Below, piece by piece: positions 7,463 to 43,374 of a stretch of 64,000 nucleotides of DNA. The position numbers and the translations under genes were made by a program. Within the stretch, counting starts at the first letter, position 1. Every line of letters begins with the position of its first letter. The notes under the pieces are model-generated. The model was not told the origin of the DNA, did not search any database, and saw only the letters and a list, made by a program, of their open reading frames with translations. This stretch comes from Mizuhopecten yessoensis (taxonomy: Eukaryota): assembly GCF_002113885.1 (NCBI RefSeq), contig NW_018404676.1, forward strand, positions 92,948-156,947, in the 5' to 3' direction.

Positions 7463-7619
7463 TGTAATAGGATGAGGAATGGTGTTAAAGATAGGGCCGT
7501 CGCTGGGGCTCGAACCCGCGACCCTTGGCTCTCAAGCCTGATGCTCTACCGCTGAGCTAAAGGGAAATTCCCTACAGCTGACGCTTGTAAGGCAACCTAA
7601 TTAATCCACATCTTTTACA
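7463..7619 (-). mobile_element. Solo LTR-like element (TGTAA...TTACA, 4-bp GTAC target-site duplication) containing a tRNA-derived segment
   Basis: gtac|TGTAA at 7459-7467 and TTACA|gtac at 7615-7623. The minus strand reads TAGCTCAGCGGTAGAGC (box A) ... GGGTTCGAGCCC (box B) but has no proper acceptor stem. Confidence 0.7.
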
Positions 7620-8373: not shown

Positions 8374-11300
8374 TCATCTCCGACCTGTGATTCTAACTAC
8401 TGGTAGTCCCGAGCTTGGTTGCAGTGGTACCATATTGTTTTGGACAGGCACAGGTGGTCTTTGAGACTGTCCCATCATAGTGTTTAGTGCCCCTGTATTT
8501 GGAGGCATAGTTTGAAAAGGTGGTGGAGCACTGACACCAGGCTGCTGAGGAGGAAATCCAGGTCGAGGTGGCGGTGGTGGAAAATTAGTCTGTCCCTGGA
8601 AGGGTGGCCCATTAAACTGCTGAGGTGGCGGGAAGCCTGGGGGGTACTGACCTACTTGTGGTGGAGGCTGGTTTGTGTGAAAGGCCTGCTGTGGAGGTGG
8701 AGCTCCAGGATTTGCAGGACCAGCAGGATACCCACCAGGGCCAGGGTACTGTGGCTGGACAGGTGGAGGCTGCTGATAGGCTGTGGGTGGGGCATATGTG
8801 TTTGGCTGGTAGGGGGCAGGGGGGTACTGTGCTGGGGGTGGGTACTGAGGAACTGCTGCAGGAGCTGAGGCAGCAGTTGTGGGGGGCTGAGTCTGTAAGT
8901 AAGATGATGTGGATACAAGTCCTGACCCACTTACTAGTGTCTCTATAGATTTACTACCCTCCTGTGACAGAAACGAGGATGGGTACTGTGATGATGAAGA
9001 TGCCATGTAAGCTCCATACTGTGTGTAGTCTGGTTTGCTCTGTACAGGGGGAGCTGAGCTGTAATTGGAGGCTGGGGCAGAGCGTGGTAAAGCAATCGAG
9101 GATGGGGCTTCCGGTACAGAGCCGTTTTTCTTGCTTGAATTTCGTCTTGAGCCAGAGTCTTTACTTTTCTGCCTTTCTGGTTGTAATTTGGGTACCTTAG
9201 CCTCAAGTGCTGCTTCAGCTGGAGTTGTCTGTAAACATGTATTATAAGCAATCAGTAACCTTTTAACTCTACCATATAGGATTGAAAGCAAAATGCACAA
9301 GGAGCCTCTACTGTTTATACATCTATGTATCATTTCACTATACAAGCAAAGACACTGTCAATTATTCTGATGGCAGAATACTTTAGTAATTTCATGAGTA
9401 GGACAGAAAAAATAGTTAACAATATCTCAGTAGCTATATTGGATATAGAATTGTTTACTTACTGGGAGACTGCGTTTTCCAACCTGTGGTGGCGGTGGAG
9501 GAGGGGTGTCCCTGGCTGTTGACTTTTTACTGGGAGTAACTGGAGGAGAGTCTGTACCAGTTCCCTGGGGATTGTTGGAATAAAGGTCAAGCACCTTGTG
9601 ACATATATCTGAAACATAAAAACATCACAAATCATGTTTTTTATATTACATACCTACCAAATCTTACTACTAATACAGCCAGTTTTCATGCCAAACAATA
9701 CCAGGTTCTGTAATTAAGCTTACAATTATAGAATTATCCTAATACGTATTGTCTAAACTTTATTTTGAGTATAACTTTTAAGCTAACATCCACTGATCGT
9801 TAAGGTTGGACAATTATAATACAATCAACAATACATTTGCAATATATGTCTATCAATATATATTACAAAATGTTTTTGAATCGCCAATATGCAACAATAA
9901 CATTTTTCAACAAACTTTTATTGGGATAGGTACCACGTAGTATGGAAACTTTTTACAGAAATAGTGTTGAAATTGAGTTAATGTAAGTAAACTAAGTTTG
10001 CTTGGTGTAATGACTTCCAGTATTATATATTCTTCAGTTATCTGTCTTTGATTGGAGGTCATGATCAGTAGGTGTAATCATTCAGAGTGTGGTAACTACA
10101 CAAGTGGATGTAAATTGTAAAAGTTGTCTGGACAAGACTCATTGAAAAGTCTTGATGATATCTCTACTTTGGAGCTGTATTATGCGTTAATGATCTAGAT
10201 TTTACCTTCTTCAACTTAATAGCTGTACTTTATTAGTCACTCTGATTATAATTTATCAATAATATAACCATTTATATATTTTCATTTCAAATTGAACATT
10301 ACCCCTATAAATACGAGTTTGATAAGCACATAAGTATTTTAAAATATTTATCATATGAAGTCATACTGTGTCATTAGTTGACAGAATATTTTCTGGACAG
10401 CTCAAATTAATAATTTATTGACTTTATTTCTTATCTATTTTGTATTTAAAGGTGAAATTGACAAAAGAGACTGTAAAAAAGCACCATCAACAGCCTAGTA
10501 CATTGAGAGAAATCAAATTAATGTGAAACAGAAATGATTTTAAAGAGTTAAAAACTGACCTTCCATAAGTTCAACAGTGATATCCTCCACCAGGAACTCC
10601 CACCACCTGGTCTTTGTTCCAGGTACCTTGCCGTGCCAGTCCTGAATATCAAACTTTGTGAGGCGAGTGCCTAGGTACATCAATGACACACTGATCACCT
10701 CTGGCTCCCATTGCAGGCACTGGGTTGTACACAGGCTAAAGGCAAACATTCCACATTAATATCTATAATGTCTGGGGGGGGGGGGGGGGGGGAGACATAA
10801 ATGTCCTAACAAGAATTGTTTAAGGACAGACGGAATGACAGACAGACAAAGGACCATGGACGCAGGGTGATTTGAATAGCCCACCATCTGGCTAAAAAGT
10901 CACGAAAAATTTACTTGAAGGTGAATGAGGAATTAGAGATATCCAAAGTAATGATAATGGTCAAATGTACAAGAATTACAGATTTCCAGTGGGACTCATC
11001 AACCTCTTGAAGAATCACTATATTTCTTTTATGAATTTTAAAATTTTGAAGATGTTTTTGACTAGCCTGAAAAAATCCCTGTAACGTAACTGTTGCACAT
11101 GACCACTACATGTGTTGAAGTATAAGAACACTGCCTATCTAAATACTGACTTACCTGTCATTGATAAAAGTCCAGGCCATCTGTACCAGTTTTTGTATCT
11201 TCTCTTTGTCACCTACAAGCATAAAGAAATTAGGTAAAGTGGCAAAATGTATGCTACTAAGTTACATGCAATAGCGGCAGCCAGAGATACTACCACTACG

Positions 11301-14300
11301 CTAAATAACAATAGCGTACACAGTCAACAAAACTCTGCAGTTGTATTTACTTCAACTCATCGACCAGCTAACACTGGCTCTACAGTGTTAGGATACACAG
11401 TATGATCCTATATTGACCTGATTACGGGGTGATGGGTGCACTGAACTCACAAGGACCAAATTTCTTCCCCCACAGAAAGCTGATGTCCTGTTAAAGTAGA
11501 GCCAATATTGGACAAATAATACCAATGTGACAATAACAGTGACAAAGACTTTATTCTCGCAAACTTGTGTACAGCCCTGTAGATGGTTTTGGTGATTGTG
11601 CAAGCTGTTGTTAACTTGTCTTTTAGTGTCGCATGCTTTACATTCTCCTGAATATGGCTGTTTAACATTGGATGTAAGTGACACTAATGTACAAAAATCA
11701 TTAAAACAAATATCAGTTATCCCAGAAGTATTTCAAATTCAATTTGTCAATGATTTAAAAAAAAAAAATAGCATATATATATTAATCAATACAATATTGA
11801 GGAATTCGCAAGAGCTGCCTTATCAGGTGCTAACTACTAGTCCTATGCCACCTGGCTAATATCTCCCTATGTGTGTATGCCTGTGTGTGTGCTGGAGATG
11901 TATTGTGTTATGTTTAACACTCAAAATGGACTTAAAACTATATACAATGAATTGGATAAAACAACTGTTACAATACATCTTAGCCTCCACTTCAATTTTG
12001 TTTTGTTATACTATGTGCTGATCAAAAGTGGTAATGGGAACTGTATATCTCGAAGTTAATGCAAGCAATAATTTATTTGCACTGTATTAAAACCATGTAG
12101 GCAACAGTTTAAAGGGGCTGGACGGGGAATAAATTACAAAATAAATGGGTCCAAATGCGTTCTCTGGCCTTCCAAAAGTTATACCACGGCAATATGATGG
12201 TTGAGTTCTGCTTGCAATGTCCAGTTTTGACCAGCAATACTATACGTAAATAATTGTTTTCAAAGGTCATGTATGATGCAAGTGCAGTATTCCTACCTAT
12301 ATGTTGTTGTTATATATAACGGTATTGATACCTCGTGCCTGTCATGACTTTTGCGTGCCTCTTTTTCTTTCAACACAATGTTTACATTTGGCCTTGTTGA
12401 TGACGCGCGTGGGGTAAAATTACATCACTGATATGGGTCAATTGAGAGTTTTAGACTGCCAGGTGACGATTTAGGATTTCTTTAATATAATTAGAATTTT
12501 TACTATTAGGGAGTGAGTTTCAGCTAAATTTGAATCGGTATATGCCATTTTAGCAAATATGACATTTTTTCGCCGACCAGCCCCTTTAAAAAGAATATGA
12601 AAAAAAAAGTTATTTGGAAAATACCATATCTCAAATTCCTGAACTAGGTGTTCAGTGTTCGACAGTAAAATGTACTAGCCAAAAGATATTCTTCATAATA
12701 CTGAAGCATTATATTAACGTGTTGTCACACAGAAACTTTCAGCTTAATTTTTTTTTTCCAATTTTAAACTGAAGGTTTCTGTGTACACATAACCCCCATA
12801 AAATGAATGGTAACTGACAGATGCTGTAGTGTGACCTCTTGTGTGTGACATCAATATCATGTGATAATGAAGAAGATGTCCCCAATAAGTTATGATATTC
12901 ATTGGTCATATGATTATCAACTGAACTTGGTTGGGTTTTAATATTATTGTTAGTGTGTATATGTGACACCAAGTATAACATGGTGGCTTTTCATCCGACT
13001 GTTGAGTGTTAACTATTGTGTACCTTTGATGAATTTGGCAAACTTTAGCAGGTATCCGTACGGATGTTCCACTTGTAGGTCAAATTTGATGGTTTGTAAC
13101 AGAATTCTTTCCATTGTCATCACTTCCTCCTACAAATACAAACAAAGGACCATATAGTATTTTACTTCATGTATCAATGAAGGTTTAATATTTCATTCAT
13201 TAAATGCACAATGTATATATATAGTCATTTACCAATTAGTTATACATTCAGTACATTTACAAGCACAAAACTATGTAGAGTACAATTCATAATTACTCAA
13301 ACAAAATAAATAATTTATATACAATGTGCACATTGTACTTACATATCTGCATGTGTGTTTACCAGTAATCTCAATCTTAATTTCAGGTAACTGACAAAGA
13401 CTGACCAGTACAGCATCCAACAGATAACATCTATTTCAAAAGAAAATTCTCACCCTTGGATCATCTCCAAATACACTGAACACCTGAGGTGACAACATAG
13501 ACTGACATATTTTGATGATGTCTTTGCCTTTCTTTGGGGTCTCCTCTACCTTCCCAGCCAAAAATAGACAGCATGCTGCTGTTATCTGTAAAACAAAATA
13601 CATAAATTTAAATTGTCATGAGATAAAGTGTTTTTTCAACTAATAGTTTCAGTAAACACAACAAGAGGCCTGCATTGCTCACATTGTCTGTTATCATCCT
13701 ATTTAAAATCACATTTCATACTGTAACCTAACCTGAATGCAAGTAATGGTCATAAACTTGGTTACAGTTAATAGTCTTTACCCCTGCAAATGACAGACTG
13801 AAAAGTATGAACCTACTAGTCCTACTGCCACTGATATCATTTGATCTATATATATTTTACATTGGACTCAAATGATTGTCACGTGAATGTAAGTCACACT
13901 CATGTATCTTTAAATTCAGCACAAGCGAACTTGAAAGTGATAAGGTCATTTATTAGAACAACTTGGTACTACAACCCTTCACCCCCGCAAGCTACATGCA
14001 ATATATCACAACCTGAGGCCTTATAGTTCTAAGAAGTTGTTTAAAGGAAAGTAAATGATGGATTGATCTAGAAGACAAGGTCATACCATGACATAAGCTT
14101 ATGCCAGGTAGACTTACCAAGCAATGACAAAAATGATTACGATGTCGTGTCATGACAACAAATGTTTCATTGTCATTTATTTTAATGACATTGTATTTGA
14201 CAGGAAACTATTCCAATTATTACCCAATTTCTAAATTTTGTCAATCTGCATATATTGCCAGTGGTAATAATTTCTTATTTAACTGTAAAAAGCCTTACAT

Positions 14301-15064
14301 GTATCACTAATTATACTCACATATCTGTGGAATTCCTTGAAGGAGTGAAACATGTAGAATCTGTGGAAATACACAACACCTGTACCACAGGTATCATATC
14401 GCCTGCCAGACTGTCAAGGATTCATAATTTAATGTACAATGCTCATGTTTATGCCATCTCTATATATTAAATTACAGCATTAAAAAGGGGGACTTGAATT
14501 ATTATTTCAAAGAGATTTTATCATAAATCTCATTTGAGCTTATATGAATCAAAACAATTTTCAATATCAAAAAAATCATTGTGTGCTTGGTACAGAACTT
14601 TCTAAAATGGCTACATTGAATGAAGAACTGATAATTAGCCAATGACAGCATATTGTGTTGTTGTTACATCACATTGCTATACCGTGTGATAACACAGAAT
14701 ACATGTAATGTTGATGTGTATTGATTTGCATTGGCGATGAGTACCTGGTATGACGTCTTTTTCAAAGAAAATCATACCTACGGAATTTCATTATATGATA
14801 TGAACAGGAAACAAATAAAACTAGTGGCTTTCTTAAGTCTGTGAATTGACCTTTACCATACCTCAATGTGCTCCTGTCACTGTGTGAATCTGACAGATGG
14901 AATAAATCTATTTATTACGAAGGATACAGTCCCATCTTGGTACCAGCATCAATGATAAATCTTGCTCCTTCTCGTCTATATCTAGCTTCTGTGCCAGCAT
15001 CAATACCATCTTGGAATGAAGGTGTATTTCGTAATTCTTTCTTTTCAAAGTACCAACACGGCAT
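8374..15064 (-). CDS. CCNK: Cyclin K
   Basis: Coding exons (minus): 15064-14928, 14402-14321, 13585-13454, 13129-13024, 11212-11155, 10735-10560, 9608-9463, 9228-8374; phases consistent. Protein [109 protein letters not shown], then a Pro/Gln-rich tail typical of cyclin K. Confidence 0.96.
11799..11909 (-). mobile_element. Dispersed repeat fragment, same family as 35920-36140 in opposite orientation
   Basis: GAGGAATTCGCAAGAGCTGCCTTATCAGGTGCTAACTACTAGTCCTATGCCACCTGGC... is a close reverse complement of 35920-36031. Confidence 0.75.
12113..12585. mobile_element. Non-autonomous DNA transposon (MITE), TTAA target duplication, Kolobok-like termini
   Basis: ttaa|AGGGGCTGGACGGGGAA ... TTCGCCGACCAGCCCCT|ttaa: imperfect terminal inverted repeat flanked by TTAA, no internal ORF, inside a CCNK intron. 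Confidence 0.75.
14403..14927 (-). other. U12-type (minor spliceosome) GT-AG intron in CCNK
   Basis: Minus-strand 5' site GTATCCTT (14927-14920), branch point TCCTTGAC (14420-14413) about 10 nt from the CAG, no polypyrimidine tract; splicing restores the frame KMGL|RYD. Confidence 0.92.
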
Positions 15065-16029
15065 GTCTGGAATTATGAAATAATATTGATATGATATGTG
15101 CAGCAGCATGTTAATTATTCATTTACCTTCTAATACACAAAAATGTATCGAATGCATTAATGTTTGATCTCCTGTCATTTCTTAGACTACTTGCAAAATG
15201 TCTTTCATAGCAATTCTATTCAACTTACCTTATTTAGTTTAGAAAATGGCAATAGAAATTATCAATGAGAAAAATGTTAATAAACAGCCAAACACAATAT
15301 TTTCAAATACATTTAGTTGTACAAAAACACTGTTCTAATCAATATTTGCCACTGCAAAACTTCAAAACATTTCTGAAAATGTTTTGCATACGATCCTTAT
15401 GAAAAATCTACAAAATTACGACTTCCGTAATCGTCGGTATCGACGGGGGAAGGAGAAAAGATGAAGAAGATGAAATACTGAAATAAATATGTCCAAAAGC
15501 GAAATAAGATGTTGTCGTAAGTTATCTCCCTTGATGCTATTATTTTGCGACGTCTTTTGTTTAAATATATCAAAAGTGGATAAGTATTGCCTTCCGGTGG
15601 TAAAAGAAAACAGAAAACTAAAAATTATCATAGAAATATGTCAAATTACCTACAATTCTCAATAAATCATCCGAGCTGTCAAATTCAGACGTGTAAATAC
15701 AGTAGGCCTAGAGCTGAAATAACAATTACTGTTCATGTTGACTGACTTATATTTGTTGTGACGTTCCATTAGAGACGTTACACATCCACATCAATATCAT
15801 CCATACAACGTCTGGAAAGAGATAAGCCCGTGGTATAAGTCCATGGTACACAACTGAAAATAACCTATCATGAGAATGGGCCGATGAGACTCGACCATTT
15901 GTCGACTAGAGGCACAGCAAAATATTACTTGACGCCGTCCCGTATATCATATATGTTTGAACCAAATAAAGAATTTTACTTAAAATGAATTGTGATAAAC
16001 AAAACCTATCAATTATGATAAAAAAATAC

Positions 16030-17853: not shown

Positions 17854-20800
17854 ATGGGCAAGAAAAATAAAAAACAAAAAGATGCTGCTGCTGCTGCTGC
17901 TGGAAAGCGAGCAAGCACTCCTCCTGAATATAAAGAATTATCAAAGGCTTCAAAGAAAGAAGTGATGGAATTAGCAACAAAGCTGTTGGAATGTAAGTAC
18001 ATTGTATTCTCTCAACAAAGAATAATTCAAGTAACAACGGTTTTAGAAGGATATTTACAGGTACATCCTGAACATCATTTTCAAATGTTGATGAGTCCCA
18101 TTACTAAGAGTTGAGTGTCACAGATAAAGCACAAGTCCAGAACTTGAATATCTCTGTCACCAATATTGCTGAAATATGAGATAGAGATAACCATCACCCT
18201 GTTTAATACTACTTGTTGGTAAGAATGCAGTGCATTCCAAAGTGCACACCAAAGTATCTAATATAGAGTTCAATCAGAGATTGTGATACACGTACCCAGT
18301 AGTTCACCTTTAGTTAAATGGCAGGTAAACATTCATGTATGAGTGATAAAGTGTAAATAACAATGGCTCTTTGACGTGGTCTTGAGGATAATAAAATAAT
18401 AATGAATAATATTTATACTTCAGTGGAAAGTAAACATTTGCCATCACAGTTTCAAAATGATGATTGCTAGCAATATCAATATAAGCTTTATTTTGAATTG
18501 TCTCATTTCATCAGTTTTGATGTTTCAGTTTGTTCCAAACCTATTGCTCCTGGTCCAAAGGAGATAGAAGATTTCCCCGAGATTAACAGCATGGTGGAGA
18601 AAATCCGTAGCATTCAGACAGGTGAGTTACTGAACACTGTCCCTTATATATGATCATATATATAAACCTTGTGTCATTTACCTGACACCAGCATACTATC
18701 TTTGACTCACCATATCCGCTATTCTTGCTCATCTTTACTCTAAATTTGAACATCACACCAACATGTGTCTGACCATTAATTATACCAGTTGAACTTAACA
18801 CCATCAAACAACTTATTAAGATTCTCACATTAATCCAAATTGTGTCTCATTATTACACCAACCTTGACTCACCATCACATCAATTTGTGGGTCAACAGTA
18901 CAACAGTTTACAGCTCGCTATCTCACAAACGTGTGGCTCACCATGACCAACTGTCCATCCTACCAACTTGTGACTCACCGTCAATAATACTTGTGGCTTG
19001 CCTCACAAATATTTTGCTTTCCATGGCCTTTTGTCCCTCAAACTCAACCAACTTTTGACTACAGTAGTGAATTAATTTGTTACTTGTCAGTAAACACACA
19101 GAATCTTCATTTTCTCAAATACAGAAATTGGAAGACATGCTCACACCTAACAACAAATTAATTAAAGTGCACCTTAGTGAAAGAAACGAAATTGAAATTC
19201 ACGTAGTAACTGGTATTAGCATACAAGCAATAAACATACACATGTACTGAAATCTAAGTTTATTGCTCAATGAAAAGTCTTAATTTCGTTCTTTTTAGAG
19301 GCAACATACACTCAACCAGAGAGAGAAGCATGCATTCCTGCATTTATAGAATGGCTAAATAACAGCAAAGTGGACACATCTGCCATAGAAATAGAAAACT
19401 TCCAACATGTGGGATATGGCATCAAGGCTACCAAAGATCTCAAAGTATGTATGAAGAGAGTAATCACAGGATAAACCAAGTTGTTGGGGTGTTGTTGTTT
19501 GTTTGCGGGGGGGNGGGGGGGGGGGGGGGGTTAAAGCACATTTAAAATCTGTGAAAAACAGATATAAAGCTGATATAAGCCAAATATTTATGCAGGCAAA
19601 TGTCAATTTTTAATATTTATAGTTCATAATCCGTTGGTAGTGAAATTATGATGTGTGTGTGTTACCTTTTCTAATCCTAAACAAGAAATTAAGTCAAATA
19701 CATATCTGTAGCAGATTAGTATCAATAGATTTTAAGCCACTTTCTGTTCAGTTGAATTACAAATATTTCAATTGTAAGGTCACAATTGAAATACAAAAAA
19801 GTGCATGAAATTATATTTCTAAGATAAAACAAAAATCTTTGGAAATTAATCTTATCTTGATTCTTCATGAATTTATATATGACAATACATCTAAAAATTT
19901 GATGTAAGTAGTTGGACTTCACTTTTGGACATTTGTTATGACCATCTTACTTACATCTTCAATAAGATTCATCAGTTTGGAAATATGTGATATCAAAGTT
20001 TTACTTTTTTCACAAACAATGTACGCTTAATACGTACATTGTTTGTGTAAAAAGTAAAACTTTGATATCATCTTACTTACAACTTTCTGCCAGACTTACT
20101 AATACTTGTATTCTTTATTGGTGATGAAGCTGTTTTTGGTAAATGAATACAGGTAACCAAAGCTTAACTTAAATACTGAAGCTGGTATAAGACATGTTGA
20201 TTTGTGATTTGGTAGGAAATGGACCCTTTTGTGATTGTTCCCCGGAAGATTATGATAACAACTGACACAGCTAGAGCATCAGGATTAGGTAGGTATGGTT
20301 TACTTAATCGTAACAACCTACATCAACATCAGTGGACATTTGTTTAAGATTTATAATTTGCTTTTCTTATTTCTTTTTTTTTTAAAGAAACTGATGAACA
20401 CATTATTTGTCTATGTACACTGCTTAGATATATGGAAATTACAACAACAAATTATTCAGATTTGACTAGATTCACTTAGAGAAAAATATAATATATCAAT
20501 AGATACAGGTGCACTTAAATAAAGGTCACATAATATAATTCCTGTGTAAAGATGAAGCTTTACGCTGAGTATGTCTTGTTATATTTTGTTTGCAAAGCAT
20601 GATGTTTTATTAATACAAAAACTTGACAATTTATTTACTGTAAATGCAGTATTTTTACCCTACCAGACTATTGCCTTCTGGTCATTTTAAACAAAGTTGC
20701 CCAGTGTTGTATTTCCCCTTCTTTTACTTTGAAATTTTATAGCTGTGTACTAGTTTTTGCCACTTTATTGAATATGTCTTCTCATTCTAGGCAAAAAGAG

Positions 20801-23800
20801 CAAAGCTAGAACGGAGGTGAACTTTTCCTATTTTACTGTTTCAAAAGGCTATACAATTTGATTGCTGGCAGTGAGATTGTGTCCCATTTTTCTGTTGACA
20901 GATGCCTTGATAGCTGAGGACAAGATCTTACAGGCCATGCCAAGCATAGTGTTGGCGCTTCACCTCCTGTGTGAGAGAAGAAGTACAGAGTCTTTCTGGA
21001 AACCCTACCTTGATATCCTTCCCTGTCAAATGTGGTGCAGACCTGTGTCAGTTGCAGGTGTTTTTGCTTGGGAAGCACCTGTTTATAAAAGATAACCAGT
21101 TTGGGACTCTTTGATACAAAAAAAGTAAAATGTAGTGTACAAATCAAACTCAAACTCATCATGTCCAGTAAAAGTAAAGCTATAGAATGGATTTTTTGTT
21201 GTAACAATAAGGATTCTATAGCATATATGTACAAGTCAACTTGTATGAGTTAATCTATGAAGCACATATGATTTTATGTTAGCTAGAATCTTTTCATTGT
21301 AGTGTCAAGATAATTGTTTTTTTCCTTAACACTGCCCTACATATGCTTCCTAGCGGTTACACTACACCTTTATACTTCTCACCAGAAGAGCTGAATTTGC
21401 TGAAGGGATCCCCGGCCTACAGTAAGTACATTTACAGAAGGTTTAACAGATCAGAAAAAACCTGTGTCAAATAATAAGTAGGATAAATTTTACCTCTAAC
21501 AATAATATTACTGGCATTGTTTTGTATCTAAAACGATATATGACTACTGTCGTTGGGCAATGATGTCTTGTTTAACAGGGCAAAATGATTAGGCATACAA
21601 GTGTGTCTGAGCGTTTTAAAAAAATCTTGAGATCTTGCAAATTAAGAACCTTACATTATAATGTGTGTTGATTTTGGTTTTTTCAGAGGACTGTGTTAAC
21701 CAGTACAGAAACATAGCTCGTCAGTATGCCTACTTTTACAGGGTATTACAGGTGAGTTATTGTTTATATAGGCTATGATTTACAATTTGTGTCATTTGTC
21801 ATGCATACCTAATAACAAAAATTGTGAGGATCAACTTTATGTCATTAGGATACAAGCACAACTATTAATAGTAATTAGCACCTATATACTTCTTTGTAGA
21901 ATTTTAGAATGTGCTTGGGGGGGAAAAAATGCTTCTTTAAGGATTGTTTTCTCTTAACAGAACCATCCTGCTGCTGCCAAACTGCCCATAAAAGACTGTT
22001 TCACTTATGATGATTACAGGTAAGGGTTCAATCTGTAAATGTAATATTAGAGATGACGGAGATCTAACAATTACAATCAAAGTTCAACTGCAGATTTTGT
22101 TGTACAAATAAACAATCTACTTCAGTCAACAGGGGAGATAACCCACCCCAGTCTTGCATCTCCATAGGGGAGATAAAACCACCATAGCACTTCATCTCAC
22201 TCGAAGGGGAAAAAATCCTGTAAACTTCTATATCATACCTTAGTCAGTCGTTAAGTAACCTCTTCAGTCCTTACCTTGCTCAGAGTTGGGCATCTCATTT
22301 GTTAGGGGCAACACCTCATTTCAGTCTGTATGCATGGGATACAAGAAATCTTTACATTAATTCTAAAACATATGAAATAACCAATATCTACCAAAATGTT
22401 ACCTGGATCTACATGACAAGCCAGGTCCTTACTTTTACTGACAGATGGGCAGTATCTACAGTAATGACCAGACAGAACCAAGTGCCAACGCCTGACGGAG
22501 AGAGACTGACATTCGCCCTCATCCCTTTGTGGGACATGTGTAATCACTGTAACGGAACGGTAGGTAACTCAGAAGGAATAAAGTGGTTTATTACCTCGCT
22601 TAAAGAAAGAGTTATGTGAGTTTTACGTTGTTGCACAATATCTGTCATTCAAATTAAAAAAAAACTTTTTTTGGTGATTTATGATTTTATAACTGATTCA
22701 GTAATGAATAAGTTTGTTCATACCTGGTATTTTGACTAATTTGTTTTCCAAGATGGCCATCATATTATCCAGAATGGTAATTCCAGTTTGTATCATAATA
22801 AGCGAACCTTTACATTTAATTGTTGAGTTTGGGGTATCATGATGCTTTATCAAGCTGGCTTGTAATAATTATTTATTTTGACGATGTAAAGGTCAAGCTT
22901 TAAACCTGTCTGACAAGAGTAACATTATATATGGACCTGTCATATCACAACTTCTTTTAGTGGTATTGTCCATTTTTGTACTTTCTTGGTGAACCTGCAA
23001 ATGAGACAAACTATTTTAAAACCCTGTTAGAACTAACAATCTTGAAACCACAGTGTCAGCACTACTTTTCATGTTTATCTATCTAAATGAGATGGATAGC
23101 GCTGCTGTATATCACCAGCTGTTTGGTAACATGTGAATGATTGCTGTATGTGTTGACAGATTACTACAGACTATAATGTAGAGGAGGACTGCAGTGAATG
23201 CTTTGCTCTCAGAGATTTTACCAAAGGAGAACAGGTAATATTTCAGCTTGGAAACAAAAATTGAAATGTTTTACAAAAATTACTCATAATTGAGGAATAA
23301 TATTCATTGCAAAAATCCAATAATACTTCAATGTTACTGGTTTGGTAATTATGATCAAGAAAATTATTTTCATTAAATTTTATATTGGCTGCAAATTCTT
23401 AATGTTGAATTCCTTCCTACTTTACTTATATAATACATATGATAATTAGCAATAATAATATAATCTTCATCAAGATTGGAAAGGAGGGTGACCTTACATG
23501 ACATGCTTGTGACTAAAGAAGACAGGAGAGTCCTGACATGACACGATATTTAACTAGGAAGGACAGGAGTGTGCCCTGACATGACATGATTGTGACCTGA
23601 CATAACATGATAGTGACCTGACATGACATGATCCTTGACTAGGAAGGACAGGAGTGTGACCTTACATGATTAAGACTAAAGAGGATGGGAGTGTGACCTG
23701 ACAAGATTAAGAATAGAGAGGACAGGAGGGTGACCTGACATGATCAAGACTAGGGAGGACAGGAATGTGACCTGACGTGATTAATACTAGAGAGGACAGG

Positions 23801-26800
23801 GGTGTGCCCTGACATGATTAAGAGTGTGACCTGACATCACATGATTGTGACCTGTTATGAAAAGATTGTGACCAAACTTGACATCATTGTGACCTGACAT
23901 GATTAAGACTAGAGAAGACAGGAGTGTGACCTGACATGATTAAGACTAGGGAGGACAGGAATGTGACCTGACATGATTAAGACTAGAGAGGACAGGAATG
24001 TGACCTGACATGCTTAAGACTAGGGAGGACAGGAATGTGACCTGACATGCTTAAGACTAGAGAGGACAGGAGTATGACCAGGCATGATTAAGACTAGAGA
24101 GGCCAGGAGTGTGACCTGACATCACATGATTGTGACCTGTTATGAAAAGATTGTGACCAAGCTTGACATCATTGTGACCTGACATAACATGATAGTGACC
24201 TGACATGACATGAATGTGACTAAAGAGGACAGGAGTGTGACATGACGAATGTGCCCTGACATGATTAAGACTAAAGAGGACAGGAGAGTGACATGACATT
24301 ATTTTGACCTGACATGACATGATCTTTGGCTAGGAAAGGAAAGGAGGGTTACTTGAACTGACATAATTGTGACTACAAAGAACAGGAGTGTGACCTGACA
24401 TGAGTAATACTAGAGAGGACAAGAGTGTGACCTGACATGATTAAGACTAGAGAGGACAGGAATGTGACCTGACAAGATTAAGACTAGAGAAGACAGGAGT
24501 GTGACCTGACATGATTAAGACTAAAGAGGACAGGAGAGTCCTGACATGATTAAGACTAGAGAGGTCAGGAATGTGACCTGACATGATTAATACTAGAGAA
24601 GACAGGAGTGTGACCTGAAATGATTAAGACTAAAGAGGACAGGAGAGTCCTGACATAACACGATATTTAACTAGGAAGGACACGAGTGTGACCTGACATG
24701 ACATGATTGTGACCTGACATGACAAGATTGTGACCTGTTATGAAAAGATTGTGACCAAACTTGACATCATTGTGACCTGACATAACATGATAGTGACCGG
24801 ACATGACATGATTGTGACTAAAGAGGACAGGTATGTAACATGACATTATTTTGACCTGACATGACATGATTGTGACTAAAGAGGACAGGTATGTAACATG
24901 ACATTATTTTGACCTGACAATCACATGATTGTGACCTGTTATGAAAAGATTGTGACCAAACTTGACATCATTGTGATCTGACATAACATGATAGTGACCT
25001 GACATGACATGATTGTGACTAAAGAGGACAGGTATGTAACATGACATTATTTTGACCTGACATGACATGATTGTGACTAAAGAGGACAGGTGTGTAACAT
25101 GACATTATTTTGACCTGACATAATATGCTTGTGACTAAAGAGGACAGGAGTGTGACCTGACATCACATGATTGTGACCTGTTATGAAAATATTGTGACCA
25201 AACTTGACATCATTGTGACCTGACATAACATGATAGTGACCGGACATGACATGATTGTGACTAAAGAGGACAGGTATGTAACATGACATTATTTTGACCT
25301 GACATAATATGCTTGTGACTAAAGAGGACAGGAGTGTGACATGACATGATTAAGACTAGAGAAGACAGGAGTGTGAACTGACATGATTAAGACTAAAGAG
25401 GGCAGGAGAGTCCTGACATGACACGATATTTAACTAGGAAGGACACGAGTGTGACCTGACATGACATGATCTTTGGCTAGGAAAGGGAAGGAGGGTAACT
25501 TGACATGACATAATTCTGACTACAAAGAACAGGAATGTGTCCTGACATGATTAAAACTAGAGAAGACAGGAGTGTGACCTGACAGGATTAAGACTAGAGA
25601 GGACAGGAGTGTTACCTGACATGATTAAGACTAGAAATGACGGGAATGTGACCTGACATGATTAATACTAGAGAGGACAGGAGTGTGACCTGACATGATT
25701 AAGACTAGAGAGGACAGGAGTGTGACCTGACATGACATGATCCTTGACTAGGAAGGACAGGAGTGTGACCTGACATGACATGATTGTTACCTGACATGAC
25801 AAGATTGTGACCTGTTATGAAAAGATTGTGACCAAACTTGACATCATTGTGACCTGACATAACATGATAGTGACCTGACACGGCATGATTGTGACAAGGA
25901 AGGACAGTAGTGTGACCTGACATAACATTATTGTAACTAGGAAGGACAGGAGTGTGACTAGAGAGGCTAGGAGTGTGACCTGACATAACATGATTGTAAC
26001 TAGGAAAGAAAGGAGTGTAACTAGAGAGGTTAGGAGTGTGACCTGACTAGAGAGGATGGGAGTATGACCTGAAATGACACAGGAGTGTGACAAGAGAGGA
26101 CAGGTGTGTGACATGACATTTTTTTAACCTGACATGACATGATTGTGACTAAAGAGGACAGGTGTGTAACATGACATTATTTTGACCTGACATAATATGC
26201 TTGTGACTAAAGAGGACAGGAGTGTGACATGACATTATTTTGACCTGACATGACATGATTGTGACTAAAGAGGACAGGAGTGTGACATGACATTATTTTG
26301 GCCTGACATAATATGATTGTTACTAAAGAGGATCGGAGTGTGACATGACATGATTTTGACCTGACATGACATGATTGTGACTAAAGAGGACAGGAGTGTG
26401 ACATGACATGCCATGATTGTAACTAAAGAGGACAGGAGTGTGACCTGACATATTATTTTGCCACTTTTTGTTACGAATGGAACATGATACAATTGTGACC
26501 CCATTTCATGACATGATTTTAACATGTCAGGATCATGACTTAGATCCAAGGCAACTCCTGAACATCTCTTGTGAGGAAGTTTGTTGATAATATGAAAGCT
26601 TTTTTTAACATTTTGGTTTATACATATGTACCAATTTAATATGTAGGAAGAATACAAGAAAGATATCTGTGAAGATTTCCATGCTTTTCAGATAATGATA
26701 TTCTACGGTGCCAGATCAAATGCAGAGTTGCTGATACATAGTGGGTTTGTGTATCCAGACAATGAATGGGATAGAATAGCAGTTAAACTGGGTAAGATAC

Positions 26801-29800
26801 TTTGTATCATGTTAGTGGTATGCTTCCAGGCAATTATACAAGCTTATTTCATTGCCAAAAATGAATCGGTTCCCTTCTAAAAGTATGCTAGTATTTTCAC
26901 GTCTATTACAAAAAAATCCTTTAAAGGTGTTATCAGTTTTTAGAAAGTGAAATCACTGTCATGAATATTATACTATATGAACTATACAACATGTTTGTTT
27001 TAAGTATTCTGACATTCTTTTTTTTAGTATCAAGAAATGAGAGGAAAAGTTTAAAAAACTAATGTTTACCCTCGTTTGACTGTCTTGATTAAAAAGTATT
27101 TGTTTTCCCCTAAAAGACATGTGATTGATGCATGAAGTTGCATTAATCCCAGACTTCAGGGGATAGAGCTGGGGGCCCGGGGTAGATAGGTTCTTTTTAA
27201 CCCTGGCATGCATAACTCATGTTTTATTTCAGTAAAATATACATATAGTACTAGTTATGAGAAATGATGACCAACAGTTTGATACGTAATCAATGTTTTT
27301 GTACCAGGTATCAGTAAAGGTGAACCACTGTTTGACATAATATCGATGTTTTTGTACCAGGTATCAGGAAAGGGGACCCACTGTTTGACATGTTATCAAT
27401 GTTTTTGTACCAGTTATCAGTAAAGGTGATGCACTGTTTGATATGTAAACAATGTTTTGTACCAGGTATCAGTAAAGGCGACCCACTGTTTGATACGTAA
27501 GCAATGTTTGTGTACCAGGTATCAGCAAAGGTGACCCACTGTTTGACATAATATCAATGTTTTTGTACTAGGTATCAGTAAAGGTGACTCACTGTTTGAC
27601 ATGTAAACAATTTTTTTGTTCCAGGTATCAGTAAAGGTGTCCCACTGTTTGATATGTAAGCAATGTTTGTGTACCAGGTATCAGTAAAGGTGACCCACTG
27701 TTTGACATAATATCAATGTTTTTGTACCAGGTATCAGTAAAGGTGACCCACTGTTTGATATGTAATCGATGTTTTTGTACCAGGTATCAGTAAAGGTGAC
27801 CCACTGTTTGACATGTAATCAATGTTTTGTACCAGGTATCAGTAAAGGTGACTCACTGTTTGATATGTAAACAATGTTTGTGTACAAGGTATAAGTAAAG
27901 GTGTCCCACTGTTTGATATGTAATCGATGTTTTTGTACCAGGTATCAGTAAAGGTGACCTGCTGTTTGACATGTAATCAAAGGTGACCCACTGTTTGACA
28001 TGTAAACAATGTTTGTGTACCTGGTATCAGTAAAGGTGACCCACTGTTTGACATGAAATCAATGTTTTTGTACCAGGCATCAGTAAAGGTGACCCACTGT
28101 TTGGGATGTAAACAATGTTTGTGTACCAGGCATCAGTAAAGGTGACCCACTGTTTGACATGAAATCAATGTTTTTGTACCAGGCATCAGTAAAGGTGACC
28201 CACTGTTTGATATGTAAACAAAGTTTTGTACCAGGTATCAGTAAAGGTTACCCACTGTTTGACATGTAATCAATGTTTGTGTACCAGGTATCCGTAAAGG
28301 TGACCTGCTGTTTGACATGTAATCAAAGGTGACCCACTGTTTGACATGTAAACAATGTTTGTGTACCGGGTATCAGTAAAGGTGACCCACTGTTTGATAC
28401 GTAATCAATGTTTGTGTACCAGGTATCCGTAAAGGTGACCTGCTGTTTGACATGTAATCAAAGGTGACCCACTGTTTGACATGTAATCGATGTTTTTGTA
28501 CCAGGTATCAGTAAAGGTGTCTCACTGTTTGACATGTAAACAATGTTTGTGTACCTGGTATCAGTAAAGGTGACCCACTGTTTGACATGAAATCAATGTT
28601 TTTGTACCAGGCATCAGTAAAGGTGACCCACTGTTTGATACGTAAACAATGTTTGTGTACCAGGTATCAGTAAAGGTGACCTGCTGTTTGACATGTAATC
28701 AAAGGTGACCCGCTGTTTGACATGTAATCTATGTTTTTGTACCAGGTATCAGTAAAGATGACCCACTGTTTGATGTGTAAACAATGTTTGTGTACCAGGT
28801 ATCGGTAAAGGTGACTCACTGTTTGATATGTAAACAATGTTTGTGGACAAGGTATCAGTAAAGGTGACCCACTGTTTGACATAATATCAATGTTTTTGTT
28901 CCAGGTATCAGTAAAGGTGACCCTCTGTTTGACATGTAATCAATGTTTGTGTACCAGGTATCCGTAAAGGTGACCTGCTGTTTGACATGTAATCAAAGGT
29001 GACCCACTGTTTGACATGTAAACAATGTTTGTGTACCAGGTATCGGTAAAGGTGACCCACTGTTTGATGTGTAAATAATGTTTGTGTACCAGGTATCAGT
29101 AAAGGAGACTCACTGTTTGACATGTAAACAATGTTTTTGTACCAGGCATCAGTAAAGGTGACCTGCTGTTTGACATGTAATCAAAGGTGACCCACTGTTT
29201 GACATGTAATCTATGTTTTTGTACCAGGTATCCGTAAAGATGACCCACTGTTTGACATGTAATCAATGTTTTGTACCAGGTATCAGTAAAGGAGACCCAC
29301 TGTTTGATGTGTAAACAATGTCTGTGTACCAGGTATCAGTAAAGGTGACGCACTGTTTGATGTGTAAACAATGTTTGTGCACCAGGTATCAGTAAAGGTG
29401 ACCCACTGCTTGATATGTAAACAATGTTTGTGTACCAGTTTTCAGTAAAGGTGACCCACTGTTTGGTTTGTAAACAATGTTTGTGTACCAGGTATCGGTA
29501 AATGTGACTCACTGTGTGGTATGTAAACAATGTTTGTGTACCAGGAATCAGTAAAGGTGACCCACTGTTTGATATGTAAACAATGTTTGTGGACAAGGTA
29601 TCAGTAAAGGTGACCCACTGTTTGATATGTAATCGATGTTTTTGTACCAGGTATCAGTAAAGGTGACTCACTGTTTAATGTGTAAACAATGTTTGTGTAC
29701 CAGGTGTCAGTAAAGGTGACCCACTGTTTGATGTGTAAATAATGTTTGTGTACCAGGTATCAGTAAAGGAGACCCACTGTTTGATGTGTAAACAATGTTT

Positions 29801-32800
29801 GTGTACCAGGAATCAGTAAAGGTGACCCACTGTTTGATATGTAATCGATGTTTTTGTACCAGGTATCAGTAAAGATGACCCACTGTTTGATGTGTAAACA
29901 ATGTCTGTGTACCAGGTATCAGTAAAGGTGACTCACTGTTTAATGTGTAGACAATGTTTGTGTACCAGGTATCAGTAAAGGAGACCCACTGTTTGATGTG
30001 TAAACAATGTTTGTGTAGCAGGTATCAGTAAAGGTGACCCACTGTTTGATATGTAAACAATGTTTGTGGACAAGGTATCAGTAAAGGTGACCCACTGTTT
30101 GATATGTAAACAATGTTTGTGGACAAGGTATCAGTAAAGGTGACCCACTGTTTGACATAATATCAATGTTTTTGTTCCAGGTATCAGTAAAGGTGACCCT
30201 CTGTTTGACATGTAATCAATGTTTGTGTACCAGGTATCAGTAAAGGTGTCCCACTGTTTGACATAATATCAATGTTTTTGTACCAGGTATCAGTAAAGAT
30301 GACCCACTGTTTGATGTGTAAACAATGTCTGTGTACCAGGTATCAGTAAAGGTGACCTGCTGTTTGACATGTAATCAAAGGTGACCCACTGTTTGACATG
30401 TAAACAATGTTTGTGTACCAGGTATCGGTAAAGGTGACTCACTGTTTGATGTGTAAACAACGTTTGTGCACCAGGTATCAGTAAAGGTGACCCACTGCTT
30501 GATATGTAAACAATGTTTGTGTACCAGGAATCAGTAAAGGTGACCCACTGTTTGATATGTAAACAATGTTTGTGTACCAGTTTTCAGTAAAGGTGACCCA
30601 CTGTTTGTACCAGGTATCAGTAAAGGTGACTCACTGTTTAATGTGTAAACAATGTTTGTGTACCAGGAATCAGTAAAGGTGACCCACTGTTTGATACGTA
30701 AACAATGTTTGTGTACCAGGTATCGGTAAAGGTGACTCACTGTTTGATATGTAAACAATGTTTGTGTACCAGGAATCAGTAAAGGTGACCCACTGTTTGA
30801 TACGTAAACAATGTTTGTGTACCAGGTATCGGTAAAGGTGACTCACTGTTTGATATGTAAACAATGTTTGTGTACCAGTTTTCAGTAAAGGTGACCCACT
30901 GTTTGGTATGTAAACAATGTTTGTGTACCAGGTATCGGTAAAGGTGACTCACTGTTTGATGTCTAAACAATGTTTGTGTACCAGTTATCAGTAAAGGTGA
31001 CTCACTGTTTAATGTGTAGACAATGTTTGTGTACCAGGTATCGGTAAAGGTGACTCACTGTTTGATGTCTAAACAATGTTTGTGTACCAGGAATCAGTAA
31101 AGGTGACTCACTGTTTAATGTGTAGACAATGTTTGTGTACCAGGTATCGGTAAAGGTGACCCACTGTTTGTACCAGGTATCAGTAAAGGTGACTCACTGT
31201 TTAATGTGTAGACAATGTTTGTGTACCAGGTATCGGTAAAGGTGACCCACTGTTTGATGGGTAAACAATGTTTGTGTACCAGGTATCGGTAAAGGTGACT
31301 CACTGTTTGATGTCTAAACAATGTTTGTGTACCAGGAATCAGTAAAGGTGACTCACTGTTTAATGTGTAGACAATGTTTGTGTACCAGGTATCGGTAAAG
31401 GTGACTCACTGTTTGATGTCTAAACAATGTTTGTGTACCAGTTTTCAGTAAAGGTGACCCATTGTTTGGTATGTAAACAATGTTTGTGTACCAGTTTTCA
31501 GTAAAGGTGACCCATTGTTTGGTATGTAAACAATGTTAGTGTACCAGGTATCAGTAAAGGTGAGTCACTGTTTGATATGTAAACAATGTTTTTGTACCAG
31601 GTATCAGTAAAGGTGACCCGCTGTTTGACAGGAAGTCTGATTTGCTGATGAAGCTAGGACTAGAAGTGTAAGTAGTGTACATATATTCTTGTTGTTGAAG
31701 TGATGTTTGTTCTATGACCTGATCTTGAAAGTTTTCATACAATTTCAAAAAACATCCATTGGAGAATGATATTACAATATTAATGTTTGTGGTACTCATT
31801 AACCGTGTTTGTTGTTGTTTTTGTTAAAAAATGTCTCTTTGGGAACCTGCTGGTTACATTTGAATTCTTTATGATTATGTCTACTCTGTTAGCCAATATG
31901 TTTATTTTAATTATGGTCAAGGATCCTTATTCAATTTTTGGTTGTGCATTTCCTAGACTAAGTTGATCTCAGTTTGATAACTGCTTTTTGTACTCAAACA
32001 AACTCTGCAATACCCAGAACATAATGTATGTAATATAAAACCATATATGTTAATAATAAACTACCTTCTTAGTATAATTTGTTTAATAGTCAATAGGTTT
32101 ATTTTTATCACCTAATATTGTACACATACAAAAATGTTTCATTTATTTGAATAGTTCTCGGTCGTTCTTCATACATCGGGGAAGAGTTCCACTTGATCCA
32201 CAAATCCTCGCCTTCCTCAGAATCTTCTGCATGACTGATGGTAACTATACAAATTCCTTATATTGAAAACAGTAACATGCATAGTTTCTTTTGGATTGAC
32301 GGACATTATGTAATTATTCATAAATACTCACTTTCAGAAATGTGTCCTCTATCAGCATTAACCAAACAAAGAAATTAAAGAACATTGGAGAATTAGTTTT
32401 CTGATTTTTTCTGGGGGGGTTTCTGACATGTTTTGATAACCTTGTTTTTATATAGACAAATAATGTAAAATGGGAAATTGTTTTACCTGTTTCTTCCAAT
32501 TATCTAAAATTTAAAAGGCAGTTACAACATATTCTATGATGAAATCTGTTTTATTTCACATACATTTATCATTTAATTCATGAAGAAAATCTGAAGGACT
32601 TTCAGTCAGCTCCTCTTACGGAAGAGAAGATGGAGAGCCTTGGTGATGTGTCTACACCAGTATCTATAGAAAACGAGGAGAAGGTCTGGTCGTTTCTGGA
32701 GACACGGTCGGCTTTGTTACAGAAAGCCTACGACACTACTGCAGAGGTATGATACACTTAATAAGGCTTTGGGCTTTCTTTATCTGCAAGACACAGTTAT

Positions 32801-33225
32801 AACAAGTTTTTAATAAACATTTTTCAAACCAGATTGTAACAATATGAATTTTGGTATTTGTTTTTCATGATGGTGATCGGGTGGGAGATAGTTACTACCA
32901 ATCAGAAGAAATCTAGTGAAAGCATTTTAACAGATATAATTACACTATACTGGTGATCACAGAAACCAAAGCGGGTTTTCTGATTTGTTCATTTTCTGAC
33001 AATTCTTACGAGTAGATGTAAATTGGGAAATAACCAAGGAAATTTAAATCCTGTTTTTCTTTTCATCTTCAGGAGGACGAGGAGCTTTTAAAGTCATCAG
33101 ATTTCAATGAAAACCAAAAACTGCTTATTTGTCTACGTTTGTGTGAAAAAAATGTTTTGTTATCAGCCCAAACATTTGCCAGAACAATGAAAGAAAAATT
33201 AACTATGAAAGAGAACAAAGATTGA
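17854..33225 (+). CDS. SETD3: Actin-histidine N-methyltransferase SETD3 (SET domain + Rubisco-LSMT substrate-binding domain)
   Basis: Coding exons 17854-17992, 18529-18621, 19299-19444, 20216-20288, 20902-21012, 21341-21421, 21687-21751, 21961-22019, 22445-22559, 23160-23234, 26692-26791, 31601-31667, 32155-32240, 32586-32746, 33073-33225; phases consistent. Motifs MGKK.., GYGIKATKDL, DKILQAMP, SFWKPYL, YTTPLYF, ARQYAYFY, RWAVSTVMTRQNQVP, ALIPLWDMCNH, IFYGARSNAELLIHSGF, LAFLRIFCM, VSIENEEKVWSFLE. Confidence 0.96.
19988..20070. repeat. Near-perfect inverted repeat (38-bp arms, 7-nt loop) in a SETD3 intron
   Basis: TGATATCAAAGTTTTACTTTTTTCACAAACAATGTACG / CGTACATTGTTTGTGTAAAAAGTAAAACTTTGATATCA, one mismatch. 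Confidence 0.9.
21013..21340 (+). other. U12-type AT-AC intron in SETD3
   Basis: 5' site ATATCCTT at 21013, branch point TTTCCTTAAC at 21321-21330, terminal AC at 21339-21340. Removal gives the in-frame FWKPYL-D-MLPSGYTTPLYF. Confidence 0.93.
23485..26460. repeat. Complex satellite (~37-bp GACTAGAGAGGACAGGAGTGTGACCTGACATGATTAA units mixed with ~21-bp TGACATGACATGATTGTGACC units) in a SETD3 intron
   Basis: Directly visible tandem repetition with higher-order blocks; it produces the spurious MSGH/CQVT ORFs. Confidence 0.95.
27265..31630 (+). repeat. ~53-bp tandem array (~80 units) built from the SETD3 3' splice site and the start of exon 31601
   Basis: Unit GTATCAGTAAAGGTGACCCACTGTTTGATATGTAAACAATGTTTGTGTACCAG; the last unit continues into the true exon GISKGDPLFDRKSDLLMKLGLEV. 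Confidence 0.97.
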
Positions 33226-33642
33226 TTTGTTTGTAGCTATTAATAGACGTCACTCAGTACATACAAGGGAACGAAGTGTGGAAGGCAATGCCAATCATCT
33301 CTACAGCAGCTAAGCGATGATGTCGTCTCCAGTAGAACTCTGAAATACCATTCATTTTTGCAGCAATGTTTTTCTTGCTGATTGAGTAACCAATTCAAAC
33401 CATCAGAAAAACTTCGAAAAACGTGAGGGGATTTTAGTGTGATGTTAATGATATGCAGGTATTACAACTTTCAATCATGTTCTTATACATTGTATATCAT
33501 TGAAAAATAGACTGTCAAACAAAGTCTGTATACATTAAGTCATGTACAAATGAAGTTAAATGCTAATCGTTTTTGAAATGTTTTAATGAATAGTACTCAT
33601 GATAAATGAAAGTGAAATAAGTTTGAGATTTGTTGGAAGTGA

Positions 33643-42381: not shown

Positions 42382-42452
42382 GCATCGGTGGTTCAGTGGT
42401 AGAATTCTCGCCTGCCACGCGGGAGGCCCGGGTTCGATTCCCGGCCGATGCA
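42382..42452 (+). tRNA. tRNA-Gly (GCC)
   Basis: GCATCGGTGGTTCAGTGGTAGAATTCTCGCCTGCCACGCGGGAGGCCCGGGTTCGATTCCCGGCCGATGCA: perfect acceptor stem, GCC anticodon, TTCGA T-loop, downstream T-runs as Pol III terminator. Confidence 0.97.
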
Positions 42453-43374
42453 CATCTTTTGTAACTTTGTTTTTTCAACCACAAATTCAGTGTCTAATAT
42501 ATCCGATAGTAACTAGTAAAGTTAGTTGATCTCTTGGTTACCAACTATTTTAAATATTTAATCAGACTCTTGTATACCAAAACAAATTTTCATTTGCAAT
42601 TCACGTAATACTGTGCCTGTGGTTTATTAGTATGTTACCTTTTCACTATTCCACTGGTAATTAGAAGAAGGTATTTCACAGTGGCCAAATTAGTATTAAA
42701 TGTTTTAGAATTATAGGTAAAATGGCAAACGGAGAATTTCCACCTGTAGTACAAGTTAAAATGACATTAGTACTATTGGTGCATGAGCGTAAGACCTTTT
42801 TCTCATCTTCTACATAGGTACAGTTCTGAGTAATTTTATTAAATTAATTACCATCTGCCAAAACCAGCAATCTGGTGTATAGCAAGTGTCATCCTCAGGG
42901 AAACTATCAGCTGTAAACAAACTTTGTGATATCTTGGAAGTCATTGTATTTACTGTGCGGATTTAATTACTGTACAACACTATACACCATTTTTGACCTC
43001 ATTAAAATGGACACTGATTTTTGTAACATCATTATCCCCATGTGTTAGGTATGCATATGGTTTAGATTTGTCTTCACCATGAACCCATTTCGTGACAACA
43101 TTTAATCAAAGCCGATCTTGTCAATTGGTAATTAGTAATTGGTATTGATAACTATCGATTTTACCACAGGAGATCACTTTGCGAATTGGTTTCTCGGGCA
43201 AAATCACAACAGGGAAGCGTAAATGGATTAGTTGGAGGGATCGACATAAACCACTATAATGTACAGTCAAAAAAAAAAGTTATATATATAGAGAAAACTG
43301 GCCTGGCACAATATGAAATACTCGTGACTACTTGCCAAATCCTGTTCGACTATTTATTTGTGCTTGCAGCCAAG

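Follow-up and report, generated by a model that had tools for sequence, protein, structure and literature searches.

A probable mirage minisatellite at the intron 11 splice acceptor of SETD3 in the Yesso scallop

The SETD3 locus and its repeated acceptor

We examined a window of 64,000 nt of the Yesso scallop, Mizuhopecten yessoensis (GCF_002113885.1, contig NW_018404676.1, positions 92,948 to 156,947, forward strand); this whole stretch is what we call the window, and all coordinates below refer to it and to its plus strand. SETD3, the gene for actin-histidine N-methyltransferase, has a coding span from 17854 to 33226, with 15 exons encoding 507 amino acids, and each of the 15 exons, checked separately, matches M. 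yessoensis SETD3 (P0110). Exon 11 (26692 to 26791) ends in phase 1 at the donor TGG|GTAAGA and is supported by the consensus of the loose ends of the junction reads described below. Exon 12 (31601 to 31667) is 67 nt long, begins the substrate-binding domain and ends at the donor AGT|GTAAGT; its junction to exon 13 (32155 to 32240), in which a C/A variant was seen at 32218, is covered by 9 reads. Between exons 11 and 12 lies an old intron of 4.8 kb, present in all of the orthologs mapped. Its first ∼476 nt (26792 to 27267) are unique and are joined to the first repeat unit in DNA contigs of the set X15.

The remainder of intron 11 is a minisatellite of period 53, which spans 27268 to 31630 and thus runs into exon 12. 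Each 53-bp unit consists of 23 nt of the intron 11 end and 30 nt of the exon 12 start, and likeness to the exon stops at exon base 30. A preliminary description, made from the sequence by itself, had reported a 4.3-kb array of ∼80 copies of the gene's own acceptor and exon start. This is borne out: sites in the acceptor register number 79, from 27308 to 31601, i.e., 78 decoys and the true site. The exon-derived core occurs 87 times, mostly at a spacing of 53 bp, with four units of 52 bp, seven of 29 bp and two of 33 bp. At its 5′ edge the array begins with a diverged half unit; the first decoy acceptor with its exon-like 30 nt occupies 27285 to 27337 (AG at 27306-27307), and the last decoy unit, 31548 to 31600, holds a consensus donor, AAG|GTGAGT, at 31560 as well as the true pyrimidine tract.

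The decoys resemble the real junction closely, with 89% identity to the true exon start and 89% to the true intron end. The AG is kept in 75 of 78 decoys, YAG in 70 and the juxtaposed AG|GT in 56. Two differences recur. Exon base +20 is G in true exon 12 and A in 69 of the 78 decoys, and a G interrupts the pyrimidine tract in 21 of the 26 decoys nearest the true site. The true 3′ splice site (31578 to 31600) has a tract of five T, kept also in the scallop Ylistrum; a TTGAT motif within the last decoy unit, ∼26 nt upstream of the true AG, is a candidate branch point. The earlier statement that only the last copy has a strong donor was too strong, as the decoys contain donor-like sites, namely, AAG|GTGAGT once, AAG|GTGACT 17 times and CAG|GTATC at most junctions.

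A search of the 988-Mb genome found matches to the 53-bp unit at the SETD3 locus only, which rules out a dispersed satellite or mobile element.

Splicing across the array

Reading each of the 78 decoys as the acceptor, we obtained a stop at the 12th codon in 66 (61 TAA and 5 TAG), in line with the in-frame TAA described earlier for most units, and within 46 codons in the others, so that all 78 give a premature stop. As had been proposed, choice of a decoy is thus predicted to truncate the protein, at about codon 364, with loss of the Rubisco-LSMT substrate-binding domain. Wrong-acceptor products with a premature stop would be expected to be cleared by nonsense-mediated decay (NMD).

Raw RNA reads were aligned to 31500-32800 only, and junctions from donor 26791 were therefore read as loose ends. 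The junction check suggested in the preliminary description gave a uniform answer: 12 of 12 raw junction reads, from one animal without NMD block that possibly carries a short allele, join exon 11 to 31601. There are no loose ends at decoy 31548, and no A replaces the G at 31620. With no decoy junction among these 12 reads, the 95% upper bound on decoy use is ∼22%. Canonical SETD3 mRNA, with exon 11 joined at 31601, is also found in two RNA contig sets, and the mRNA contigs of X2 and X5 continue without a break across donor 26791 and acceptor 31601. The RNA seen fits the suggestion that this locus is a natural test of exon definition.

One could imagine on paper an in-frame microexon of 12 nt, made through AAG|GT at unit offset 12; no matching loose end is listed.

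An indirect route would give the same message. Splicing of exon 11 to a decoy could regenerate a donor from the AG|GT there, a second splice could then lead to 31601, and the mature mRNA would be identical to that from direct splicing. Ratchet points of recursive splicing are juxtaposed acceptor-donor sites (PMC8605326), as found here in 56 of 78 decoys and at the true site. We nevertheless consider this route quite improbable. By a rough tally, the regenerated donor, TGG|GTATCA, agrees with the consensus at 4 of 9 positions, versus 6 for the native donor; the GT at +1/+2 is among the more variable positions of the unit, its T being lost in 10 of 65 units; the intron measures only 4.8 kb; and no intermediate appears in the RNA seen.

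RNA from the array itself is present in two sets. Contigs of array units have a depth of 37-117 in X2 (mRNA, 78) and of 18-42 in X5 (mRNA, 15), and neither set has a contig from the two introns that follow. Counted per copy, array RNA amounts to at least ∼4% of the mRNA in X2 and ∼9% in X5; if the arrays of these animals resemble the reference, the values are ∼10-25% and ∼25-55%, respectively. This excess over the neighboring introns speaks against a reading in which splicing takes no notice of the copies, and a length-dependent splicing cost is possible.

Such a cost would be a mildly harmful splicing load: SETD3 output would be lower the more copies an allele has, as a by-product that is not under selection, comparable to that of the human ABCA7 variable-number tandem repeat (VNTR), whose length alters splicing (PMC5954066). 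Besides the array RNA of X2 and X5, the AG kept in nearly all decoys is consistent with this explanation, and selection against competition could account for the weakened tract of the decoys closest to the true site. On the other hand, the unbroken X2 and X5 mRNA contigs speak against any major alternative path, X24 has only 2 array-like reads, and longer, more uniform arrays that stack ordinary pre-mRNA could yield the same excess. We regard a splicing load as unlikely.

Variation in copy number and among orthologs

The DNA-like contig set X15 looks very different from the reference. It contains a single 53-bp loop, with contigs of 52 and 61 nt, overlaps of 30 nt and 2, 1 and 5 mismatches, and an allele with two acceptors reproduces every one of these loop lengths, overlaps and mismatch counts. 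A reference-like array should leave ∼166 unitigs, versus 3 seen. A long array could instead have yielded the 52-nt contig as a chimera, and the depth would fit (mean multiplicity, ∼2); the four break points, all in register, and the lack of ∼160 other expected unitigs disfavor this and favor a short allele. We infer that, with contig filters as a caveat, the X15 animal carries about 2 acceptor copies, versus 79 in the reference. Individual animals thus seem to differ in copy number, over a range of about 2 to 79.

The near-absence of the array from X15 and the fragmentation of the assembly (82,659 contigs) could also mean that the assembly artificially lengthened a far shorter repeat to 79 copies, the outcome named earlier as one that would undo the whole observation. 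This is extremely improbable. The units are diverged and show a gradient of variants. The longest exact repeat inside the array is 146 bp, and the array contains 2302 distinct 31-mers, which rules out duplication of a block during assembly. Independent RNA sets contain several unit variants, and the ends of one X5 contig (31535-31576) equal those of a unitig simulated from the reference.

Comparison of the orthologous introns, along the lines of another check proposed at the outset, revealed no array at this acceptor in any of eight other SETD3 genes, among them that of another scallop, which rules out a conserved regulatory element here. Ylistrum has an unrelated donor array of 88 units of 26 bp in the same intron and two further donor arrays elsewhere in the gene. 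Among 218 ortholog splice sites (mapping in Mytilus reached exon 5 only), 11 have local, independent copies, compared with 2.8 junction-spanning arrays expected under a crude null. Plain random seeding does not explain this ∼4-fold excess, which suggests that molluscs in general are biased toward such arrays.

These comparisons bear on the proposal of a poison array under selection, whose copy number would tune the SETD3 level through NMD. All decoys give a premature stop upstream of the substrate-binding domain, and array RNA is in excess in two samples, as this proposal would have it. Yet the stops arise simply because reading runs into copied intron sequence; the array is not conserved in the eight orthologs; an apparent 2-copy allele exists; and conservation of the decoy AG does not clearly exceed that of the other unit positions, with 14 of 53 positions invariant. 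The raw junction reads, with the limits given above, contain no decoy junction. The idea of a tunable decoy thus gained no positive support, and we think it very unlikely.

A mirage minisatellite in a mollusc

The closest relatives of the SETD3 array are the mirages of amphioxus, known in Adh3, the globins BflGb6 and BflGb9, troponin C and PGBD5, which are unstable in length and leave splicing undisturbed (PMC3087553, PMC3902484). Somatic instability has been reported for the Adh3 mirage, as related in PMC3087553. Mirages are tandem copies of the host gene's intron 3′ end and exon 5′ start, and the anatomy of BflGb6 is identical to that found here. The SETD3 units lie head to tail across the host exon-intron boundary, with the authentic junction as the edge unit, and they derive from the locus. 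As in amphioxus, where units are 81-100% alike, AG and GT are kept in many units but not all, the mRNA is regular, and haplotypes differ in copy number, the last as deduced from the contig layout of X15. Unlike the amphioxus arrays, this one resides in a mollusc, and our literature search for mirages in bivalves gave no relevant paper. It has 78 spare copies over 4.3 kb, versus 3-6 units in BflGb6, and a unit of 53 bp, versus 150-160 bp in BflGb6 and 10-72 bp in Adh3. The claim of novelty therefore holds for the locus and fails for the kind of repeat, which had been named and found to be splicing neutral and length unstable (PMC3087553, PMC3902484): the SETD3 array is a large example of a type already described.

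Human genes offer partial parallels. In CBS, an intron/exon junction is present twice in the 844ins68 allele; splicing strongly favors the distal site, and normal mRNA is made (PMC2630376). It is a single 68-bp duplicate and not a hypervariable array, and the two-copy allele deduced for X15 resembles it. The 37-bp VNTR of F7 intron 7 contains pseudo-sites that are functional yet silent (PMC1557585), and there too the edge unit spans the exon-intron boundary. In F7 the repeated sites are donors, of which the one farthest upstream is used; in SETD3 they are acceptors, and the one farthest downstream is used. Mutational analysis was used to dissect the F7 mechanism, whereas that of SETD3 is deduced. 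The VNTR of ABCA7 intron 18 likewise varies in length and carries splice signals within its unit (PMC5954066), but it is donor based and its effect on splicing was measured, whereas a length-dependent cost in SETD3 is only modeled on it. Finally, introns can be gained through duplication of an AGGT proto-splice site (PMC3265369), in which, as here, a duplication over AG|GT is spliced out and the mRNA is unchanged; the AG|GT of SETD3 is the existing acceptor of an old intron, and no new intron is seen.

Thus, we conclude that the array is probably a hypervariable mirage minisatellite, born at this locus and tolerated as splicing ignores the copies through exon definition. A 53-bp tandem duplication over the junction of intron 11 and exon 12 may have been the first step and would have created one spare acceptor; short similarity between intron positions −40 to −20 and exon positions +13 to +33 perhaps seeded it. 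The gradient of variants, higher-order repeats at a local scale and what seems to be a 2-copy allele suggest that slippage or unequal exchange then raised the number to ∼79 on some chromosomes. In mature mRNA, exon 11 joins the last copy, presumably because it alone is followed by the remainder of the exon and, 67 nt on, by a GTAAGT donor; its intact pyrimidine tract would assist the choice. Rare wrong choices would bear a premature stop and be removed by NMD, and copies would persist on the intron side because their cost there is small.

In SETD3, splicing passes 78 near-identical acceptors, and normal mRNA is still made. Alleles of about 2 to 79 copies apparently occur naturally in this farmed scallop, and such a series has practical value as a test bed for distal 3′ splice site choice and for the expression cost of decoy number. 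A measurable fraction of the SETD3 pre-mRNA from long alleles might even be spliced to decoys, or only slowly, and copy number would then act as a dial of splicing efficiency. We doubt this; if true, a widespread splicing load set by repeat length would fall on bivalve genes, in which several percent of splice sites have such arrays.

Structure of the intron 11 array

The host gene of the array is SETD3. Its 15 exons, each checked singly, match the Mizuhopecten yessoensis SETD3 protein (P0110) exactly, and the junction of exon 11 (window 26692-26791) with exon 12 (31601-31667) falls at residues 352 to 354. Tandem Repeats Finder places a period-53 array at 27268-31628; parsing into units yields 87 exon-derived cores and 79 sites in acceptor register, the first at 27308 and the last, the true acceptor, at 31601; the other 78 are decoys. 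A full unit consists of the opening 30 nt of exon 12 and, after them, the closing 23 nt of intron 11, and likeness to the true exon stops past base 30. Unit parsing and exon checks thus bear out the composition, intron end plus exon start, given in the preliminary description. The decoys retain AG in 75/78 cases, YAG in 70/78, and AG/GT in 56/78. Units in the 5′ third of the array commonly have a five-T tract, whereas a G interrupts it in 21 of the last 26 decoys; the true acceptor retains the five-T form, as does Ylistrum. Exon base +20 is G in true exon 12 and A in 69 decoys, which would fit decay of a CpG in an early copy that was expanded later.

A genome search matched the unit at the SETD3 locus only. 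The array contains 2302 distinct 31-mers, the most frequent occurring 11 times, and its longest exact repeat is 146 bp. This unit divergence, together with the variant gradient, is the pattern of repeat turnover and not of assembler copying, and it speaks against the assembly artefact that the preliminary description had considered.

Intron 10 of SETD3 (23478-26451, plus strand) is filled by a 3-kb composite repeat of 21, 37, and 58 bp, unrelated to exon edges, a few units of which carry a consensus donor, CAG/GTATGT (about 24830, 24888, 25030, and 25273). Intron 5 (21013-21340, plus strand) is a U12-type AT-AC intron with donor ATATCCTT and branch site TTCCTTAAC at 21322; it is also AT-AC in Ylistrum and Potamilus. 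A cyclin-like gene (about 8400-15100, minus strand) lies head-to-head with SETD3, and a Cyclin_N gene is arranged likewise in Tegillarca (L044:1-1045); humans have a CCNK-SETD3 pair. The window also holds a tRNA-Gly(GCC) gene (42382-42453, plus strand).

Splicing to the true acceptor

Four runs were aligned to 31500-32800, a stretch that leaves out the array. Among the raw RNA reads of X24, 12 join exon 11 to exon 12 at 31600/31601 in full agreement, and 9 carry the next joint, 31667 to 32155; neither a loose end at decoy 31548 nor an A at 31620 was listed among reads on this stretch. These reads, with the unbroken X2 and X5 contigs across exons 11 to 14, establish canonical splicing of exon 11 to 31601. 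The preliminary description had proposed reading junctions from donor 26791 with and without NMD inhibition; these reads answer for a sample in which NMD is active, and 12 of them allow decoy use of up to about 22%. Since only two X24 reads are array-like, this animal may carry a short allele. At 32218, 5 of 10 X24 reads have A instead of C, likely a heterozygous site in the exon by which expression from the two alleles could be told apart.

Splicing to a decoy would be costly. From donor 26791, a stop follows at the 12th codon for 66/78 decoys and within 46 codons for the rest, and because the substrate-binding domain PF09273 begins at exon 12, nearly all of it would be deleted, in agreement with the truncation proposed earlier. 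Stray decoy-spliced products would be NMD targets. The array would have originated in a single 53-bp duplication, with expansion of the duplicated unit afterwards, and the last acceptor would be chosen through exon definition. The remaining 37 nt of exon 12 and the GTAAGT donor follow the last copy only, but the claim that no other copy has a strong donor needs qualification: donors in decoys are weaker except for one AAG/GTGAGT, which would leave a 41-nt intron. A recursive route, in which a decoy AG/GT is reused as donor, is conceivable, as the motif is present and the mRNA would be identical to that from direct splicing, but the regenerated donor is weak.

In the RNA contig sets X2 and X5, several contigs consist of array units, with depths of 37 to 117 against an mRNA depth of 78 (X2) and 18 to 42 against 15 (X5) over 31500-31630; in neither set does a contig cover either of the two introns that follow. 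If all 78 copies stack, array RNA amounts per copy to about 4% (X2) and 9% (X5) of mRNA; at reference-like multiplicities, it amounts to about 10 to 25% and 25 to 55%. Ordinary pre-mRNA stacked on arrays that are longer or more uniform would account for the excess, and slow splicing or a low level of decoy use would do so too. Each set has one unbroken contig across exons 11 to 14, arguing against a major side path.

Length variation and junction repeats in other species

The contig set X15 behaves as DNA, since its intron coverage is even. Four of its contigs lie at the junction. One runs through unique intron and stops 8 nt inside a unit, two short ones measure 52 nt (depth 14.7) and 61 nt (depth 10.1), and the fourth (depth 7.5) extends from the true exon. 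A two-acceptor allele accounts exactly for how long these contigs are, for their overlaps of 30 nt, and for their 2, 1, and 5 mismatches; a reference-like array would give about 166 unitigs on this stretch, versus the 3 found. We strongly infer that this animal has about 2 acceptor copies, versus 79 in the window, with the proviso that contig records may be incomplete.

SETD3 was mapped fully in Ylistrum, Pinctada, Tegillarca, Ostrea, Mya, Potamilus, Haliotis, and Branchiostoma and partly in Mytilus. Intron 11 is present in 8/8 fully mapped orthologs, and none of the eight has copies at its acceptor. The preliminary description had also suggested a poison array tuning SETD3 output; this lacks both observed decoy use (12 X24 junction reads, NMD active) and conservation (8 orthologs). 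In Ylistrum, the orthologous intron opens with an unrelated 88-copy, 26-bp donor array. It is the first of three donor-type mirages (minisatellites whose unit spans an exon-intron boundary of the host gene) in the one Ylistrum balloti gene, at L041:11169-13457, 6641-7587, and 8372-9042, with 88, 53, and 16 copies. Eight further junction-spanning repeats, mostly at donors, occupy different introns in Pinctada, Tegillarca, Ostrea, and Mya (L043 to L046). Of the 218 ortholog splice sites, 11 are accompanied by local copies (9 donors and 2 acceptors), and the introns concerned differ between species. Junction arrays thus arise often and independently, and the intron 11 acceptor is not special. Placement is possibly biased towards junctions: a crude placement null predicts 2.8 sites in the six other bivalve genes tested, versus 11, about 4-fold (Poisson P of about 2e-4, rough as that null is). 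Elsewhere in the window, a minus-strand gene has a putative donor near 57281, and about 40 nt past this donor a 52-bp array (56765-57283, minus strand) begins; the array's likeness to the exon end is weak (best 17/28, not significant), and it is possibly an old donor mirage.

Mirages have been described as tandem duplications of an intron 3′ end and 5′ part of an exon, often with AG/GT, that are length-unstable and leave regular splicing unaffected (PMC3087553); those of Adh, troponin C, and PGBD5 behave likewise (PMC3902484). Where CBS 844ins68 duplicates a junction, splicing strongly prefers the distal site (PMC2630376), and F7 VNTR pseudo-donors are functional yet silent (PMC1557585). Length can nevertheless alter splicing, as for the ABCA7 repeat (PMC5954066). 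The SETD3 array is a real, large example of the described mirage kind, and it is probably a neutral one. The kind of repeat is already described; what makes this array convenient as a test case is its size, the apparent range of alleles from 2 to 79 copies, and the excess of array RNA.
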